Below, piece after piece: positions 7,315 through 62,698 of a stretch of DNA of 64,000 nucleotides; within the stretch, counting starts at the first letter, position 1; each line of letters begins with the position of its first letter. The translations under genes and the position numbers were made by a program. The notes under the pieces were generated by a model. It was given only the letters and a program-made list of their open reading frames with translations. It was not told the origin of the DNA and did not search any database. Location of the stretch: IMG/VR virus record IMGVR_UViG_3300032296_003307, positions 62,001 through 126,000 of that record; one strand, given 5' to 3'.

Positions 7315-9171
7315 ATGTTAACAACAGAATCACAAATTTTGTCGGAAATTACTACCCATTTGAAATATGCTAAATTCGTACCCGAAAAGCATAGAAGGGA
7401 AACGTGGGATGAGTTGGTTACCCGAAACAAAGAAATGCACATCAAAAAGTTTCCCCAATTGGCTGAAGAGATTGAAGCCGCTTACAAGTACGTTTATGAC
7501 AAAAAGGTATTACCATCAATGCGTTCAATGCAATTTGCTGGTAAACCAATTGAAATAAACAATGCTCGTATTTTTAACTGTTCTTATTTACCAATTGATG
7601 ATTTTAGAGCATTTTCTGAAATCATGTTCTTATTACTTTCAGGTTGCGGAGTAGGTTATTCAGTACAAACACATCATGTAGAAAAGTTACCTGAAATTAG
7701 AAAACCACTTAAGTGGAAACGTTATTTAGTAGGTGATTCTATTGAAGGTTGGGCTGATGCAGTTCGTATGTTAACCAAAGCTTATTTTGGTCAAACATCA
7801 ACTGGTCCTTTATTTGATTTTAGAGACATTAGAGCAAAAGGTGCTTCATTAATTACAGTTGGAGGTAAAGCACCAGGTCCTGAACCATTGAAAATTGCTT
7901 TAATTCATATGCAAGCGATTTTAGACCATAAACAAGATGGTGAAAAATTAACTACTTTAGAATGTCACGATATTATTTGTCATTTGGCTGATGCTGTATT
8001 ATCAGGTGGTATTCGTAGAGCAGCTCTTATTGCTTTGTTCAATCTTCATGATGAAGATATGTTGACTTGTAAATTCGGTAACTGGTGGGAAAATAACCCT
8101 CAAAGAGGTAGAGCAAACAACTCAGCTGTATTACTTCGTAATATGATTGATAAAGAAACATTTATGAGTTTGTGGGGTAAAATTGAGGCATCTAATAGTG
8201 GAGAACCAGGTTTCTTATTTACAAATGATAAAGATGCTGGAACTAACCCTTGTGCCGAGATTAACTTAAAAGCTAATCAATTCTGTAACTTGTGTGAAAT
8301 CAATGCTTCAGATATTGAAACACAAGAGGAATATAATGCAAGAGCTAAAGCAGCAGCTTTCATTGGTACACTACAAGCTAGCTATACTGATTTCCATTAC
8401 TTGAGAGACATTTGGAGAAAAACAACCGAAAAAGAAGCATTGTTAGGTATTGGAATGACAGGTATTGCCTCAGGTGCTGTATTAAAACTTGATATGAAAC
8501 AAGCAGCTAAAGTAGCAGTATCAGAAAATGAAAGAGTAGCTGGTATTTTAGGTATCAATAAAGCAGCTCGTGTTACTACAGTTAAACCCTCAGGAACCAC
8601 TTCATTAGTATTAGGTACAAGTTCAGGTATTCACGCTTGGCACGATGATTACTATATGAGAAGAATTCGTTTAGGTAAAAATGAAGCTTTGTATACTTAT
8701 CTGAATGTTTACCATCCTGAAATGTTGGAAGATGATTTCTTTAAACCAAATCTTCAATCAATTGTTTCTGTTCCTCAACGTGCTCCAGAAGGTGCTATTA
8801 CACGTAAAGAATCAGCTATGGATTTGTTAGAACGTATTAAAACCATCAACAAAAACTGGATTAAACCAGGACATAGAAAAGGTGCTAACATGCATAACGT
8901 ATCAGCTACTGTTACTATCAAGCAAGATGAATGGCCTGCAGTTGGAGAATGGCTTTATGAAAATAAAGAATACTTTACAGCATTGTCTTTCTTACCATTT
9001 GACGGACACACCTATAAGCAAGCTCCTTTCGAAACTATAACAAAGGAAGAATTCGAAGCAGCAGTTAGTTCATTACATAAAGTAGATTTATCTTTAGTAA
9101 TTGAAATGAATGATAATACAGCATTAATGGAAAATCTTGCATGCTCTGGTGGGCAGTGTGAGATAGTTTAA
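7315..9171 (+). CDS. nrdJ: Class II (B12-dependent) ribonucleotide reductase
   Basis: VLPSMRS, FNCSY, TNPCAEI, VKPSGTTS, C-terminal ACSGGQCEIV; no beta subunit in the window. Confidence 0.85.
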   Translation: MLTTESQILSEITTHLKYAKFVPEKHRRETWDELVTRNKEMHIKKFPQLAEEIEAAYKYVYDKKVLPSMRSMQFAGKPIEINNARIFNCSYLPIDDFRAFSEIMFLLLSGCGVGYSVQTHHVEKLPEIRKPLKWKRYLVGDSIEGWADAVRMLTKAYFGQTSTGPLFDFRDIRAKGASLITVGGKAPGPEPLKIALIHMQAILDHKQDGEKLTTLECHDIICHLADAVLSGGIRRAALIALFNLHDEDMLTCKFGNWWENNPQRGRANNSAVLLRNMIDKETFMSLWGKIEASNSGEPGFLFTNDKDAGTNPCAEINLKANQFCNLCEINASDIETQEEYNARAKAAAFIGTLQASYTDFHYLRDIWRKTTEKEALLGIGMTGIASGAVLKLDMKQAAKVAVSENERVAGILGINKAARVTTVKPSGTTSLVLGTSSGIHAWHDDYYMRRIRLGKNEALYTYLNVYHPEMLEDDFFKPNLQSIVSVPQRAPEGAITRKESAMDLLERIKTINKNWIKPGHRKGANMHNVSATVTIKQDEWPAVGEWLYENKEYFTALSFLPFDGHTYKQAPFETITKEEFEAAVSSLHKVDLSLVIEMNDNTALMENLACSGGQCEIV

Positions 9172-9179
9172 TATTTATA
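9172..9179 (+). promoter_or_regulatory. Putative late promoter family TATTTATA, representative copy
   Basis: Sense-strand octamer shortly upstream of starts at 9172, 9247, 9808, 13726, 19500, 26515, 29837, 31574, 44375, 48142, 49468, 53103, 61200 and on the minus strand at 60581-60588; variants TATTTATT at 17427, 23540 and 54372, TATGTATA at about 46568. Confidence 0.8.
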
Positions 9180-9183
9180 CGGT

Positions 9184-9219
9184 ATGTGGAATAGTATAAA
9201 AGAAAGAATATTTTATTAA
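9184..9219 (+). pseudogene. First dead 5' stub (MWNSIKERIFY*) of the membrane-protein gene at 10403
   Basis: Shares AAAGAAAGAATATTT and IKERIF with the stub at 9622; has its own TATTTATA at 9172. Confidence 0.65.
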
Positions 9220-9257
9220 ACTTTGTAAATTAATAACAGAAAATAATATTTATAAAC

Positions 9258-9560
9258 ATGAATAATTTCGATTTAAAAAAATATTTAGTAGAAAATAAAT
9301 TAACTAAAAATAGTCAAGTAGAAGAAAATGAACTTGAAAATATATTTAAACTAGATAATCAAAACAGGCAAATTACTTTTGACTTGAGAAAACTATCTAA
9401 TTCAGAATTTGAAGAAATATATGATTCATTGACTAATAACCCTGATATATATAGAATAAGAACTTATGGAAATGGTTTTATAGAGGTTGATTTAAATGAA
9501 TTAAATAATGAAAATAAATTATTATTGTTGAAATACAAAGATAAGATAAAAATTAAATAA
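9258..9560 (+). CDS. Cassette ORF with MNNFDLKKYLVENK leader, putative virion-internal protein
   Basis: TATTTATA upstream, hairpin downstream; leader similar to 48863. Confidence 0.7.
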   Translation: MNNFDLKKYLVENKLTKNSQVEENELENIFKLDNQNRQITFDLRKLSNSEFEEIYDSLTNNPDIYRIRTYGNGFIEVDLNELNNENKLLLLKYKDKIKIK

Positions 9561-9574
9561 AAACAAATAAAGTT

Positions 9575-9601
9575 AAGCTTGGGAAACCAAGCTTTCTTTT
9601 T
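9575..9601 (+). terminator. Hairpin AAGCTTGG-GAAA-CCAAGCTT + T-tract, overlapping a TTGG-N19-TACATT promoter
   Basis: Perfect 8-bp stem with GAAA tetraloop; near-identical copies at 20155 and 26978. Confidence 0.85.
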
Positions 9602-9621
9602 TACATTATTGATTATAAATT

Positions 9622-9768
9622 ATGTTTCAAAAAATTAAAGAAAGAATATTTCCTTTCCTGATAGCATTTTCTGCCTTATCAGTTAGTGCATCAGCTGCTT
9701 TTTATAGCGTTACTGGTCTCAGCATGTTATTTGCTGGGGCTAGTTTCGCTGTAATTATTATTTTCTAA
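9622..9768 (+). pseudogene. Second dead 5' stub (48 aa) of the membrane-protein gene at 10403
   Basis: FLIAFSALSVSASAAFYSVTGLSMLFAGASFAVIII aligns without gaps to WLITFCALGLGGTAAYYSVIGLSKMFAGVSTAVIIM of the 10403 ORF; ends in TAA just before the HNH leader. Confidence 0.85.
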
Positions 9769-9775
9769 AGAATTA

Positions 9776-9829
9776 GTTTTTTCATTACTTTTTAATTAGA
9801 ATTAATATATTTATAATAAATGAAAAAAC
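9776..9829 (+). promoter_or_regulatory. Inverted repeat covering the HNH start codon, with the late promoter in the loop
   Basis: GTTTTTTCATT (9776-9786) pairs with AATGAAAAAAC (9819-9829); TATTTATA at 9808-9815. Confidence 0.75.
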
Positions 9830-10410
9830 GAGAACATTACACAGGAAGACCTAAGGGTTTATCCAAAAAATATAAAGAATTAATTTATATAGGGGCTAAA
9901 TTTGGTAGTTGGGAAGTAATTAGTGAAGAAGTAATAAAGAGTAATTACGGTAAAAACACAATTAGATGTAGATGTAGATGTGGTAATGAAAAAAATGTTG
10001 ATGTTTACACATTAGGCAAAGACTCACAAAGTTGTTTTAATTGTGGTCATAACAAAATAGGTTCTGAGCATCAAAATTATAAGGGATATAAAGAAATACC
10101 TCAAAAATGGTTTAGTAGATATACACGTAGAGATAGAGAATGCAATATTAAAATAGAAATGATATATGATTTATGGCTAGAGCAAGATAAAAAATGTGCT
10201 TTAAGTGGAATCCCTATTGACTTTAAAAATACAAACCCAAACCCAAAAAACTATAGATGTAATGCCTCTTTAGATAGAATAGATTCTACAAAAGGTTATA
10301 TAATAGGAAATATACAATTAGTACATAAAGACATTAATAGTATGAAAAGTGATTTTGAACAAAATTACTTTATTAAAATGTGTAAATTAATATCAATAAA
10401 TAATGAATAA
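9820..10410 (+). CDS. His-Me finger (HNH-like) homing endonuclease
   Basis: CRCRCG, CFNCG, CALSG and ASLDRIDSTKGYIIGNIQLVHKDINSMK. Confidence 0.8.
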   Translation: MKKREHYTGRPKGLSKKYKELIYIGAKFGSWEVISEEVIKSNYGKNTIRCRCRCGNEKNVDVYTLGKDSQSCFNCGHNKIGSEHQNYKGYKEIPQKWFSRYTRRDRECNIKIEMIYDLWLEQDKKCALSGIPIDFKNTNPNPKNYRCNASLDRIDSTKGYIIGNIQLVHKDINSMKSDFEQNYFIKMCKLISINNE

Positions 10411-11494
10411 AAAAATATTAGCATGGCTAATTACTTTTTGTGCTTTAGGATTAGGAGGCACAGCAGCTTATTACAGTGTAATAGGTTTGTCTAAAATGTT
10501 TGCTGGAGTTTCAACAGCTGTTATAATTATGGCTAGCTTTTTGGAAATTTCTAAATTGACTTTAGCTACTTTGTTACATACTTATTGGGAACCTTTAAGT
10601 AAACTTTCTAAAATATATTATATAATTTCATTAATTATATTATCTTTAATAACATCAGCAGGAATATACGGAATGCTTAGTAGTGGATACCAAAAAACAG
10701 CAGACCAAACCAGTATTGTTGAATCTAAAATTGCTGCTTTAGAATCTAAAAAGAAATTATTTGAGGAAACCAGAGACAATATTTTAAAAGAAAAACAATC
10801 TATAGCTAATTTACAAGGTAGTTTATCTCAAGCATCTACTACTCAATACACAGATAGAAAAGGTAATCTAGTAGTAAGATCAAATGATGCAGCTATCCGT
10901 AATATTGAATCAGCTTCTAAATCAAATGAAAAACTATCAGCCAAAATTGATGTGGTTAATGATTCTATTTTTTCTATTGAATCTAAAATTCTAGAGGTTA
11001 AAACAACATCAACTGCCGAAAGTGAATTAGGTCCATTAAAATACTTAAGTAAACTTACAGGAATTGCTATGGACCGAATCATTAACTGGTACATATTAGT
11101 TATTATATTTGTGTTTGATCCATTAGCTATTGCTCTTGTTATAGCCGCTAACTTTGCTTTTGCTCAACTTACTAAACGTGATAAAACACCTGTTGAAGAG
11201 CAAGTAGATGATTTAGAAGAGGAAATGAAAGAGTGGGAAGAAGCTAGTTTGACAGATCTTCATATTTTAGAAAAAGAGGAAGAGGAACAAGTTAAAGAAG
11301 AATCTATTGTAGAAAACCATGATACAGAACGTGAAAAAAAGGTAGAGGAATCTTTGGAAAGAATAGAACAAATGACTCATAATATAAACAGTGTGGAATT
11401 TTATAAAAAAGAAGCAACTTTGAATGAAATTCAAAAATTAAGGGAATTTTTAAAATCAAACAATAAAGACGAGGATACTATAACTTATTTTTAA
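10403..11494 (+). CDS. Multi-pass membrane protein with long coiled coil
   Basis: Three N-terminal hydrophobic helices, coiled coil, further TM segment (IFVFDPLAIALVIAA), acidic tail. Confidence 0.75.
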   Translation: MNKKILAWLITFCALGLGGTAAYYSVIGLSKMFAGVSTAVIIMASFLEISKLTLATLLHTYWEPLSKLSKIYYIISLIILSLITSAGIYGMLSSGYQKTADQTSIVESKIAALESKKKLFEETRDNILKEKQSIANLQGSLSQASTTQYTDRKGNLVVRSNDAAIRNIESASKSNEKLSAKIDVVNDSIFSIESKILEVKTTSTAESELGPLKYLSKLTGIAMDRIINWYILVIIFVFDPLAIALVIAANFAFAQLTKRDKTPVEEQVDDLEEEMKEWEEASLTDLHILEKEEEEQVKEESIVENHDTEREKKVEESLERIEQMTHNINSVEFYKKEATLNEIQKLREFLKSNNKDEDTITYF

Positions 11495-11530
11495 AGTTAT
11501 TTAGAATCATTCTAAATGAAAAAAAGATTT

Positions 11531-11550
11531 GGAGGGGCGAAAGCCCCTTC
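11531..11550 (+). promoter_or_regulatory. GC-rich GAAA-tetraloop hairpin inside a promoter spacer
   Basis: GGAGGGGC-GAAA-GCCCCTTC between TTTGG (11528) and TACATT (11552); similar stem-loops at 49443-49460 and 53891-53910. Confidence 0.7.
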
Positions 11551-11578
11551 GTACATTCATATCATAATAATAAGAGTT

Positions 11579-11809
11579 ATGTTGAATCACGAAATTTATG
11601 AAGCAGAGCAAGAGTACAATAAGTATCAAGAATTGATGTTTGGTAAAGAAATTCTTACTCAAGAAGAGTATGAGTTTTGTTTTTCTTGGGACCATGAAGA
11701 GACTCGTATTTCAACTACTAAAATAGGAGAAGGTCGTTACTTAAACCTTAATGTGTATTCTGAGGTTGAAAAAGAAGAATATGATTTAAGGAGAGAAATG
11801 GGTATATGA
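11579..11809 (+). CDS. Hypothetical protein
   Basis: ATG after promoter and AGTTATG context; the track's upstream extension is unlikely. Confidence 0.6.
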   Translation: MLNHEIYEAEQEYNKYQELMFGKEILTQEEYEFCFSWDHEETRISTTKIGEGRYLNLNVYSEVEKEEYDLRREMGI

Positions 11810-61210: not shown

Positions 61211-62698
61211 GTGGGACAAAGATTTCTTATATCTGAAAGTGAAAAAAAAGATATATTAGGGTTATATGAAGACATCATAAGACCTTACCATAAATTAATG
61301 CAATGTAAATTTAGTTCCGATGGTAAAGTAATTGTTTATGAAAATGTTGCATATAGTACTGAAACAGGTGAAGAACTACTCATTAATGAAGGTTGGTCTT
61401 TAAGTGATATATTACATGCGGGTGCAGATGTTTTGTCTGCGGGTTTGGATTTTGTAATACCAGGTTCAGGGGCAATTGTTGATATATTGAACGGACTAAG
61501 TTATATAATTGAAGCTCAGTTCAAAAGCGAAGCGGAAAAAGATAGTTTATATCTTATGGCAGCGGTAACATTTGCATTTGTTGTTTTGCCAGGTCCATTA
61601 CAAACTGTTGCGGTACCACTAAAACAATTTTTGAAAGGAGGTGCAAAAGGTGCATCAAAATTAGTTTTATTAGCACTTAAAGTTGTTGGAGGGATTCTAG
61701 ATAAAGTTTTACTTGGAATACCCAAATTGATTAATAAAGCATTGAGTACCAAATTAGGGAAAGGTATATTAGGTAAGTGGGGTAAAAAAATATCTGACTT
61801 TTTTTCAGCGTTTTCCGCAAGGGTAAAAAATTTATTTAACAAAATGACTGGAGGCTCCGCAGCACAAACCGTAACGAAGAAAACTTTGACAGGTGCTGAA
61901 AAATTAGCAGTCAAGTCGTCCAAATTAACACCCAAAGCGTTAAGTAAGATGACCGTTATGTCGCAAAAATTAGTTGGAAAGATAATTGGTAACAAGGCGG
62001 TGGCACTTAAAGCTCTAGGATTTAAGCCAGGAAAAATGTATAGATATTTGGGAAAAAACGGAAAAATGAATACAGTTTACATCAAAGAAATAAAACCTGA
62101 TGGGACTGTGATAGGACTTTTTGGAAAAAAATCGGGAGATACTGTTCTTGGAACCCAAGCTGCGGTTCCCGCAGAAACATTTTTAGGAAGAGGAATAGGG
62201 GGTCCATGGGGTAGAAGAGGTTCATCAGTCATGGTTCCTTTATTTGTTAAAAGAATGACTGATGCTATGAGAGATGATGGTACTATTGATGCGAATGTTT
62301 TAGCCGCTGGTGGTGAATTAAACGCCGATGAAGTTTCCGCGGCATCTTTAGAGTTTGCACCTGAGGATGTGGTTGCTGATTACCAAGGGGATACCGGTCA
62401 GTACGATGTTTCAAGTAACGTAACATCAATTCAAAATGCGTTAATGGAGTTAGACCCTAATTCATTACCCAAATTTGGCGCTGATGGTAAATTCGGACCT
62501 GAAACATTATCCGCAATTGAAAAATTCCAAAAAGATAATGGACTTACACCAAACAAAAAGGCTGATAAAGCTTTTGTCAAAAAATTAATAGAAAAATTAC
62601 CGGCTAATAGTCCAAACAAAGAAGAATTAAATTCATTATTAACTAAACCATCTGAGGTTAAATCAACTGAAACAGATGCTGAAATTGAAACAACATAA
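61211..62698 (+). CDS. Putative virion protein: leader, hydrophobic Gly/Ala-rich region, C-terminal peptidoglycan-binding domain
   Basis: MGQRFLISESEKKDILGLY leader; IQNALMEL...GADGKFGPETLSAIEKFQKDNGL. Confidence 0.7.
   Translation: MGQRFLISESEKKDILGLYEDIIRPYHKLMQCKFSSDGKVIVYENVAYSTETGEELLINEGWSLSDILHAGADVLSAGLDFVIPGSGAIVDILNGLSYIIEAQFKSEAEKDSLYLMAAVTFAFVVLPGPLQTVAVPLKQFLKGGAKGASKLVLLALKVVGGILDKVLLGIPKLINKALSTKLGKGILGKWGKKISDFFSAFSARVKNLFNKMTGGSAAQTVTKKTLTGAEKLAVKSSKLTPKALSKMTVMSQKLVGKIIGNKAVALKALGFKPGKMYRYLGKNGKMNTVYIKEIKPDGTVIGLFGKKSGDTVLGTQAAVPAETFLGRGIGGPWGRRGSSVMVPLFVKRMTDAMRDDGTIDANVLAAGGELNADEVSAASLEFAPEDVVADYQGDTGQYDVSSNVTSIQNALMELDPNSLPKFGADGKFGPETLSAIEKFQKDNGLTPNKKADKAFVKKLIEKLPANSPNKEELNSLLTKPSEVKSTETDAEIETT

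Follow-up and report, generated by a model that had tools for sequence, protein, structure and literature searches.

A predicted HNH nuclease gene that may replace the start of a phage membrane-protein gene

Three successive gene starts downstream of a ribonucleotide reductase gene

A conserved membrane-protein gene lies downstream of the class II ribonucleotide reductase (RNR) gene in a 268-kb freshwater phage (IMG/VR record IMGVR_UViG_3300032296_003307). Here, we analyse the stretch of 64,000 nucleotides that contains this locus (positions 62,001 to 126,000 of the record, hereafter the window) and show, using comparison with related loci (labelled L followed by a number), profile and structure searches, phylogenetic tests and read-derived unitigs, that the membrane-protein gene has three starts in a row, two of which are stubs. 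All three starts are present as described in the first-pass annotation. The features of the locus are as follows, in window coordinates.

7315-9171, plus strand: class II RNR gene, the conserved left neighbour that anchors the locus.
9171-9179, plus strand: promoter-like motif ATATTTATA of the native membrane-gene start.
9184-9219, plus strand: stub 1, the first 10 codons of the resident (MWNS-type) membrane gene, then two out-of-context codons and a stop.
9209-9265, plus strand: 3' remnant (last ~19 codons, YFIKLCKLITENNIYKHE and a stop) of an HNH gene of the type found in locus L004, joined to stub 1 in the microhomology TATTT (9209-9213).
9258-9560, plus strand: orf100, a 100-aa accessory gene of the 'MxNFDLKKYLxENK' leader family, with its own ATATTTATA motif at 9246-9254 and an ATG that overlaps the stop of the HNH remnant.
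9575-9604, plus strand: terminator-like hairpin and T-run closing the orf100 cassette.
9622-9768, plus strand: stub 2 (48 aa), 47 native (type A) codons of the membrane gene, then one junction codon (Phe) and a stop.
9762-9819, plus strand: left end of the HNH element, including a promoter-like motif at 9807-9815.
9820-10410, plus strand: intact gene for a predicted HNH-fold endonuclease (196 aa) with an N-terminal Cys4 zinc-finger-like motif.
10403-10695, plus strand: imported 5' segment (type B, codons 1 to ~96) of the live membrane gene, whose start overlaps the HNH stop (ATGAATAA).
10696-11494, plus strand: resident (type A lineage) body of the live membrane gene.

The RNR gene is identified by phrog_367 (E = 1e-126) and by the Pfam RNR barrel and RNR-II insertion domains, and it is 86-94% identical in 28 related loci. 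The ATATTTATA motif occurs 14 times in the window, all on the plus strand, against 4.6 expected, and it stands at the same place before the ATG in the uninterrupted (zero-insert) alleles L042, L011, L034 and L016, although its promoter function is inferred. Pfam and PHROG searches gave nothing for orf100 or the membrane protein, and a protein atlas returned only unnamed viral clusters. Public phage records hold no close relative of the region, with only short matches, including one in the membrane gene of Flavobacterium phages.

The arrangement is unlikely in the extreme to be an assembly chimera of co-existing alleles, even though the metagenomic source contains several alleles of this gene and native and zero-insert-like contigs are seen in run X11. 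In the source run, one 940-base unitig covers 8802-9741 and one 1036-base unitig covers 9712-10747, both with 0 mismatches, so that every junction is bridged, albeit by short unitigs and not by long reads. In addition, the unit of stub 2, HNH gene and live gene was assembled independently in at least 5 samples and is present in contigs of two further studies. A simple tandem duplication of the gene start can also be rejected, as the three starts are not copies of each other: stub 2 and the live 5' end are 51% identical in protein and belong to different clades. The genome contains no second HNH copy and no further stub; the only hits are the 17-codon remnant and two weak leader-like hits.

Origin of the stubs and of the live gene

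Both stubs are true native 5' ends. For stub 1, which reads MWNSIKERIFY and then a stop, window 9169-9213 is identical over 45 bases to the native stretch from RNR stop to gene start in L042, comprising a promoter-like motif, a spacer and 10 codons, and the homology of every zero-insert relative ends at 9213. We estimate the chance of such an exact match at about 1e-22 for a 64-kb window. Stub 2 matches an HMM of the family's N-termini at E = 1e-21, is 80-89% identical to native N-termini and 80-93% identical to native alleles, and its homology to native alleles ends at 9761 in all loci. It is itself a recombinant, with an L027-like 5' end and upstream flank (9555-9761 is 90.9% identical to L027) and an L042-like 3' part (9634-9761 is 93% identical to L042).

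Relatives supply the predicted series of alleles. In twelve zero-insert alleles (L005, L011, L016, L018, L019, L024, L026, L032, L034, L040, L042 and L043) the membrane gene starts 6-16 bases after the RNR stop, whereas HNH-bearing alleles occur beside RNR genes that are 86-94% identical. A clean one-insert allele is L137, with RNR, a 47-codon native stub, HNH gene and membrane gene in this order, and the window is the two-insert case. A scan of viral contigs with the HNH protein found no relatives; these came instead from the protein database and from contig look-ups.

The sequence next to stub 1 shows that orf100 travelled behind a nuclease gene and not alone. Window 9209-9297 matches L004 5364-5452 at 87.6%, and 9205-9247 matches the 3' ends of intact HNH genes in L046-L054 at 85-86%. 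In L004/L138 an intact HNH gene precedes the same kind of gene as orf100, and leader-family genes follow GIY-YIG genes in L028-31 and L047. The conserved 5' end of the orf100 cassette (9246-9303) is 96.6% identical to L027 and its 3' flank is conserved in L027, L028, L004 and L002, while the middle is unrelated. An exact search for junction 1 in viral contigs found one hit, L045, which shares nothing else with the window and is a chance match.

The live gene is a chimera. Residues 1-85 are 83-91% identical to native type B (L057-59) but 50-55% to type A, whereas residues 86-265 are 86-92% identical to type A but 34-36% to type B. At the nucleotide level the 5' segment is 70-87% identical to the native type B genes L057/L058, against 50-70% to type A, and the body is 87-96% identical to L004/L005/L008, against 33-60% to L058, with the switch at about 10690-10700. 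The trees of the two parts are incongruent: the 5' clade has a starred support of 98, the body clade a starred support of 99, and AU tests reject congruence (p = 2e-8 and 1e-78, the latter against grouping the body with native type B). In the 5' tree, stub 2 and the stubs of L047 and L048 group together among type A alleles, beside L004 and L026, which also belong to the body clade of the live gene, while the L055 stub lies elsewhere on the type A side.

Recurrence of the arrangement and its interpretation

Upstream stubs were found in 14 loci that carry this HNH gene directly before the membrane gene (the window, L047-50, L051-54, L055/56, L137 and L139/140), and no stub was found in ~108 loci without it. 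The 14 loci cover at least five diverged HNH lineages, with HNH genes that are 97, 74, 70, 62 and 55% identical to that of the window, in RNR-linked, carbamoyltransferase-linked and lysis-like neighbourhoods. The left junction, ATTAT followed directly by TTTCTAAAGAATTAG, is identical in the window, L047 and L048, although the 5' parts of the stubs differ (MFQK, MLEK, MWSK). The right crossovers vary, at about codon 96 in the window, about codon 61-66 in L137 and about codon 51 in L051. In L139, stub and live 5' end are 95% identical in protein but 78% in DNA, so they come from two functional alleles.

Is the HNH protein an active nuclease? The 196-aa protein matches phrog_3322, phrog_1035 and phrog_374 at E = 3e-19 to 1e-11, and its AF2 model (pLDDT 88) has as top Foldseek hits PacI HNH (E = 1e-3), Cas9 HNH, Gme HNH and Cap5. 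However, Pfam and PDB sequence searches were empty, weak PHROG hits to non-nuclease Srd-like families also exist, and the canonical first histidine of the HNH motif is an invariant arginine (DRID) in this family, while D152, Y160, N164, H169 and N173 are invariant. Any activity would have to be of a non-canonical, perhaps PacI-like, kind.

Taken with these reservations, the locus is best read, with a probability of roughly 0.7, as a record of two hits by HNH homing-endonuclease elements on the 5' end of one conserved phage membrane-protein gene, in which nuclease cleavage, its site and the direction of transfer are inferred. The intact element (9762 to ~10695) would consist of a promoter-like motif, an HNH gene and a translationally coupled substitute 5' end of about 96 codons taken from the type B lineage. 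It sits after codon 47 of the resident gene, whose first 47 codons are left upstream as dead stub 2, and the imported 5' end is fused to the resident body by homologous crossover in a conserved patch around codon 96-100, so that the gene stays whole without an intron or intein. The element may spread when the HNH protein cuts HNH-less alleles near codon 47 and repair copies the element from a donor, with the stub as left and the gene body as right homology arm. The first creation of a stub needed an illegitimate left join, but this founding event is conjecture, as no donor with this HNH subfamily upstream of the gene but without a stub was found. In addition, L001-3 carry the same type B/type A chimera behind a GIY-YIG gene and without a stub, and it is therefore unclear which nuclease first imported the type B end. 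A 33-base block shared by HNH-less type A alleles differs in all five HNH-bearing live genes, which hints at a target, yet stub 2 retains this block and the element would cut its own genome if the block alone were recognized. Third-codon-position conservation across 23 type A alleles gave only a weak, non-decisive rise around codons 27-41.

The other event brought in an L004-type unit, consisting of HNH gene, orf100, its terminator and an MFQK-type gene start. Its right crossover lies inside codons ~5-25, and its left end was joined in the 5-base microhomology between resident codon 10 and the last ~19 codons of that HNH gene, which left stub 1 and the HNH remnant, either as an aborted copying tract or by a later deletion.

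The core of the first-pass annotation, successive insertions into the 5' end of one gene that each brought a replacement 5' end from another allele and were linked to homing-endonuclease co-conversion, is supported, with three corrections. The non-nuclease cargo gene, which was suggested to have used this route, did not use it on its own. The replacement 5' segment is about 290 bases and not just the ~45 codons duplicated in the stub. Finally, the proposed nested serial order is not established, as the orf100 event could have hit the live gene before the HNH gene arrived, or the already dead stub afterwards.

Could the junction between RNR and membrane gene simply be a recombination hot spot between co-infecting phages, with exchanges mediated by short conserved promoter, leader and terminator sequences, HNH genes as passengers or domesticated proteins, and stubs as by-products of illegitimate joins? 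The variety of inserts at this junction (a small basic ORF, GIY-YIG genes, leader-family genes and HNH genes), the conserved ends and unrelated middle of the orf100 cassette, the microhomology at junction 1 and the missing canonical catalytic histidine would fit. Nonetheless, we consider this unlikely, as stubs are found only next to this HNH subfamily (14 loci, against none in ~108 without it), the arrangement recurs in unrelated neighbourhoods and diverged lineages, and variable conversion tracts around a fixed junction are the signature of nuclease-started repair.

It is also improbable, though it would not contradict the origin proposed here, that the stubs are kept because they are useful, for instance with stub 2 as an expressed 48-aa single-helix membrane peptide that regulates or antagonizes the full-length protein. 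Stub ORFs are intact, with start and stop, in the window, L047, L048, L137, L139 and L055. However, the L051-54 stub has lost its start and first codons, stub lengths differ (34-47 native codons), stub 1 has only 10 native codons, and stub sequences track local resident alleles, which recent insertion explains without any selection.

Relation to known mobile endonuclease elements

Nuclease genes inside phage genes are usually borne by introns or inteins, or split the gene (PMC2988022), and an intein is present in the neighbouring RNR gene of L018. Such readings are rejected for the HNH gene in the window. No Rfam intron family matched in 8900-11600, even at E = 1, only 58 bases lie between the stub and the HNH start and none after the HNH stop, and the stub ends in a stop codon while the HNH gene has its own start. 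In genes-in-pieces created by nuclease insertion, such as Aeh1 nrdA/mobE and T4 gene 39/60 with mobA (PMC2988022), a nuclease gene also lies inside a conserved coding region without an intron or intein, but the two halves are complementary and both needed. Here, the live gene aligns with full-length homologues from residue 1 and the stub repeats residues 1-47.

The closest precedent is formed by the mobile endonuclease ORFs (mORFs) of fungal mitochondria that carry a foreign gene C-terminus, such as those in Allomyces macrogynus atp6 (Paquin et al. 1994, cited in PMC3630166) and Glomus atp6/atp9/cox2/nad3 (PMC3630166). There, too, an endonuclease gene inserted in a conserved gene brings a substitute gene end from another lineage that is fused to the resident core, the native end is left beside it as a diverged stub, and the inserted and native ends fall in different clades. 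The phage case is the mirror image, as the 5' end is replaced, the stub lies upstream, and the element also supplies a promoter-like motif and a coupled start. The predicted nuclease is an HNH-fold protein with its own ORF and not a LAGLIDADG or GIY-YIG ORF in phase with the host gene, spread in a phage genome needs co-infection, and two events are stacked at one gene. A phage precedent of a stub with a replaced gene end was not found in the literature we searched, which is not proof that none exists.

Similar to free-standing phage homing endonucleases such as T4 SegF, SegB, SegG and MobE (PMC2988022, PMC2330249, PMC2790892), the stand-alone HNH gene is sporadically present next to conserved genes, flanking sequence is converted together with it, and related GIY-YIG or HNH genes alternate at the same locus. 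The described T4-type cases, however, sit between genes or split a gene into two working halves, and the review has no case of a duplicated gene end left as a stub.

More tentatively, and with slightly less than even support, this HNH lineage may have made gene-start replacement its regular way of living inside a conserved phage gene, as a third solution beside self-splicing and gene splitting. The element would then be a self-contained module of promoter, nuclease and coupled substitute 5' end, and the stub would not be mere debris but the left homology arm that makes later homing efficient. The strongly diverged type B 5' end would both protect the carrier from its own nuclease and prevent repair from short-circuiting on the carried copy, and cargo genes such as orf100 would spread by sitting between the nuclease and the substitute start.

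On the reading we favor, a nuclease gene can enter a viral gene without splicing and without breaking it, short orphan ORFs that look like gene starts upstream of nuclease genes in phage genomes would have this origin, and stubs, remnants and crossover points record successive invasions at one locus. Part of a protein, here the first two membrane helices, would have moved between distant lineages in one step.

Finally, the locus resembles the HEG islands, and the nucleases at boundaries of genetic exchange, of ICP1-like and T4-like phages (PMC10448857), in which cargo genes ride next to nuclease genes, islands are mobilised piecemeal with partial, polar homology, and mosaic boundaries coincide with nuclease genes. 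That work does not describe gene-end replacement with stubs, and the nuclease family in the window is different. The Cys-rich DNA-binding motif ahead of the predicted nuclease domain is nevertheless reminiscent of those proteins.

Anatomy of the locus

The window comprises bases 62001-126000 of a 268,739-base virus record, and the public runs that hold it come from freshwater and lake metagenomes. On the + strand, the region of interest contains the following features:

7315-9171 (+), class II ribonucleotide reductase (RNR) gene
9184-9219 (+), stub 1
9258-9560 (+), a 100-aa gene (orf100)
9575-9594 (+), terminator-like hairpin
9622-9768 (+), stub 2
9820-10410 (+), a 196-aa nuclease-like gene
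10403-11494 (+), a 363-aa membrane-protein gene (the live gene)

The membrane protein has no named family, but more than 7,800 homologues exist in metagenomes, many of which carry EF-hand Pfam hits (P0013, P0016, P0020, P0050-P0056 and others). In other phages, the membrane gene directly follows endolysin-like and holin-like genes (L007:1408-3875, L008:4235-7060, L058:2016-4307 and L139:1781-4976, where L numbers designate related loci), which hints at a lysis-related role for the target protein.

The first-pass annotation reported three successive starts of this one gene, and we confirm that observation here by comparison with 43 viral, 80 metagenomic and about 15 further contigs carrying the gene. 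In twelve of them the membrane gene begins 6-16 bases after the RNR stop, and we refer to these as zero-insert alleles. Stub 1 and the 15 bases before it are identical (45/45) to this native arrangement in the zero-insert locus L042, and every zero-insert locus loses homology at window position 9213. Stub 2 is 80-89% identical in protein to native N-termini and matches an HMM of them at E = 1e-21, with all homologies ending at 9761. The motif ATATTTATA stands before stub 1, orf100 and the nuclease-like gene. It occurs 14 times in the 64-kb window, always on the + strand, against 4.6 expected, and typically lies a few bases before a start codon. It is a candidate phage promoter element. An assembly chimera fails on the evidence at hand, although this rests on assembled short sequences without long reads: in the source run, one 940-base and one 1036-base unitig, both without mismatch, bridge all junctions, and the unit of stub 2, nuclease-like gene and live gene was assembled in at least five other samples and in contigs of two further studies.

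What lies after stub 1? Window 9209-9265 reads, in another frame, YFIKLCKLITENNIYKHE followed by a stop, and this matches the C-terminus of the intact 211-aa HNH gene of locus L004. At the nucleotide level, window 9209-9297 is 87.6% identical to L004 5364-5452, and the segment also matches the 3' ends of the HNH genes of loci L046-L054. In L004 and L138 the order is RNR, HNH, leader-family gene, small gene and membrane gene. The join between resident codon 10 and the HNH tail lies in the shared bases TATTT, and the orf100 ATG overlaps the stop of the remnant in the same ATGAATAA arrangement as the intact HNH and the live gene. Thus, orf100 arrived behind a predicted nuclease gene of which only the tail remains, which refines the suggestion in the first-pass annotation that a non-nuclease cargo gene had used the same route as the nuclease.

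The orf100 gene (conserved 5' end at window 9246-9303) belongs to a family of small genes of unknown function that share a promoter-like motif, conserved first ~20 codons (MxNFDLKKYLxENK) and a conserved terminator, but that have unrelated middles and lengths of 73-172 aa. Other members are found at L004:5413-5670, L016:7257-7496, L020:3771-4253, L028:5685-5906 and L047:847-1365. Seven of eleven such genes in the loci directly follow a nuclease gene or its remnant. In L027 (5512-5690), a GIY-YIG gene is reduced to roughly its first 50 codons ahead of a leader-family gene, providing a second example of a decayed nuclease gene with a surviving cargo gene.

Recombinant structure of stub 2 and the live gene

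Stub 2 is itself recombinant. Its upstream flank and first codons match L027 (90.9% over 9555-9761), whereas from about 9634 on it is closest to L042 (93%), which is also the best match of stub 1 and of the RNR 3' end. The right crossover of the orf100 event therefore lies inside codons ~5-25.

The live gene is a chimera. The N-termini of the membrane protein fall into two types: type A reads like stub 2 (...IKERIFPFIIALSALSVSASAAFYSVTGLS...), and type B reads MNKK.L.WLITFCALGLGGTAAYYSVIGLS.... Type B is native in L058/L059, with no nuclease gene, and in a broad clade of other lake phages. The first 85 residues of the window protein resemble native type B, while the following residues resemble type A.

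Identity of the window protein to the two types
Residues 1-85: 83-91% to native type B; 50-55% to type A
Residues 86-265: 34-36% to native type B; 86-92% to type A

At the DNA level the switch is at about 10690-10700 (codon ~96-100), in a conserved patch, so that the replaced segment is about 290 bases long. The body tree places the window in a 13-member clade (support 99, starred) with type A genes, whereas the 5' tree places it in a 9-member clade (support 98, starred) with native type B. AU tests reject the swapped groupings, with p = 2e-8 for the 5' segment and p = 1e-78 for the body. The stub 2 of the window and the stubs of L047 and L048 group together on the type A side of the 5' tree, next to L004 and L026, which belong to the body clade, while the stub of L055 lies elsewhere on that side. 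A tandem duplication of the gene start likewise fails on the evidence. The same type B/type A chimera is, however, carried by loci L001-3 behind a GIY-YIG gene and without a stub, and it is open which nuclease first imported the type B end.

Recurrence of the arrangement and the predicted HNH nuclease

Upstream stubs occur in every examinable locus where this HNH subfamily directly precedes the gene, and in none of ~108 other loci. The arrangement is a recurrent element rather than an accident, and its neighbourhoods differ, being RNR-linked, carbamoyltransferase-linked and lysis-like.

Loci with an upstream stub and identity of their HNH to that of the window
Window: reference
L047-50: 97%
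L055/56: 74%
L051-54: 70%
L139/140: 62%
L137: 55%

The clean one-insert allele is L137, in which the RNR gene is followed by a native start at the native place, cut after 47 codons, then by the HNH, a type B 5' end and a type A body. Its right crossover is earlier than that of the window, at about codon 61-66, and in L051 only the HNH and the first ~51 codons are alignable with the window at the DNA level. The window, L047 and L048 share the identical left junction, but their stubs begin MFQK, MLEK and MWSK. In L139, stub and live 5' end are 95% identical in protein but 78% in DNA, and they are the ends of two functional alleles, not a fresh duplication. A fixed junction with variable conversion tracts on both sides is what repeated nuclease-started repair would give. 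In addition, the block GGTCTCAGCATGTTATTTGCTGGGGCT(AGT), at window 9715-9744 in stub 2 and at the same codons of HNH-less type A alleles, is identical, at synonymous sites too, in most HNH-less type A alleles and in the long stubs, but differs in all five HNH-bearing live genes, and is a candidate recognition region.

Is the protein encoded at 9820-10410 a nuclease? PHROG families named endonuclease, endonuclease VII and HNH match it at E = 3e-19 to 1e-11, whereas no Pfam model and no PDB sequence match. Structural comparison of an AlphaFold model built from 55 homologues (pLDDT 88) finds HNH nucleases first, with PacI at E = 1e-3, followed by Cas9 HNH domains, Gme HNH and Cap5. Four invariant cysteines form a zinc-finger-like motif, and D152, R153, Y160, N164, H169 and N173 are invariant in the family. 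However, an invariant arginine (DRID) takes the place of the usual first, catalytic histidine, and activity of the protein is unproven.

Alternative ways for a nuclease gene to reside within a gene do not fit. No Rfam intron family matches and there is no room for a ribozyme core; an intein is contradicted by the stop codon after the stub and by the HNH having its own start; and the downstream gene is complete, in contrast to a split gene. Hot-spot recombination with passenger nucleases, although unlikely, remains possible, as the junction hosts many different inserts. In L010, L012, L014, L015, L017 and L025, for instance, a 223-252-base insert between the RNR stop and the membrane gene encodes a small basic protein (MN.IQKLRNLIFG...KKKKSTGESK) followed by a hairpin, and represents a non-nuclease one-insert allele without any stub.

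Taken together, the structural history of the locus is secure (about 0.9), and nuclease-driven homing is its likely, albeit untested, cause (about 0.6-0.7). The interpretation in the first-pass annotation, that incoming elements landed inside the 5' end of the gene and each brought a replacement 5' end from another allele, is supported. Its nested serial order is not established, as the orf100 unit may have recombined with the live gene before the HNH came, or with the dead stub afterwards.

Relation to known elements and to other insertions at the locus

Phage reviews describe free-standing nucleases between genes, co-conversion, and genes split in two, but no stubs (PMC2988022). Cargo-carrying nuclease islands and nucleases at mosaic boundaries have been described for ICP1-like phages (PMC10448857). 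The closest precedent is in fungal mitochondria, where endonuclease ORFs insert into atp6, atp9, cox2 or nad3, bring a foreign C-terminus and leave the native one as a stub (PMC3630166). The phage case is the mirror image of this, at the 5' end, with a predicted HNH-fold protein and with a promoter-like motif and start supplied by the element, and we found no phage description of such an arrangement in the literature searched.

Duplicated gene ends also occur at the 3' end of the left neighbour. In L013 (5090-5145) and L047 (160-215), and in degenerate form in L006, L027 and L028-L031, a remnant copy of the last ~8 codons of the RNR gene, plus the native promoter-like motif, lies between the RNR stop and a GIY-YIG nuclease gene, and the GIY-YIG ATG stands where the native membrane-gene ATG would be. 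Finally, the RNR gene of L018 (2990-5986) carries an in-frame insertion of about 380 aa at the NQFC|NLCEIN site, with intein-like ends and a LAGLIDADG-type block, representing a third kind of selfish element in the same neighbourhood.
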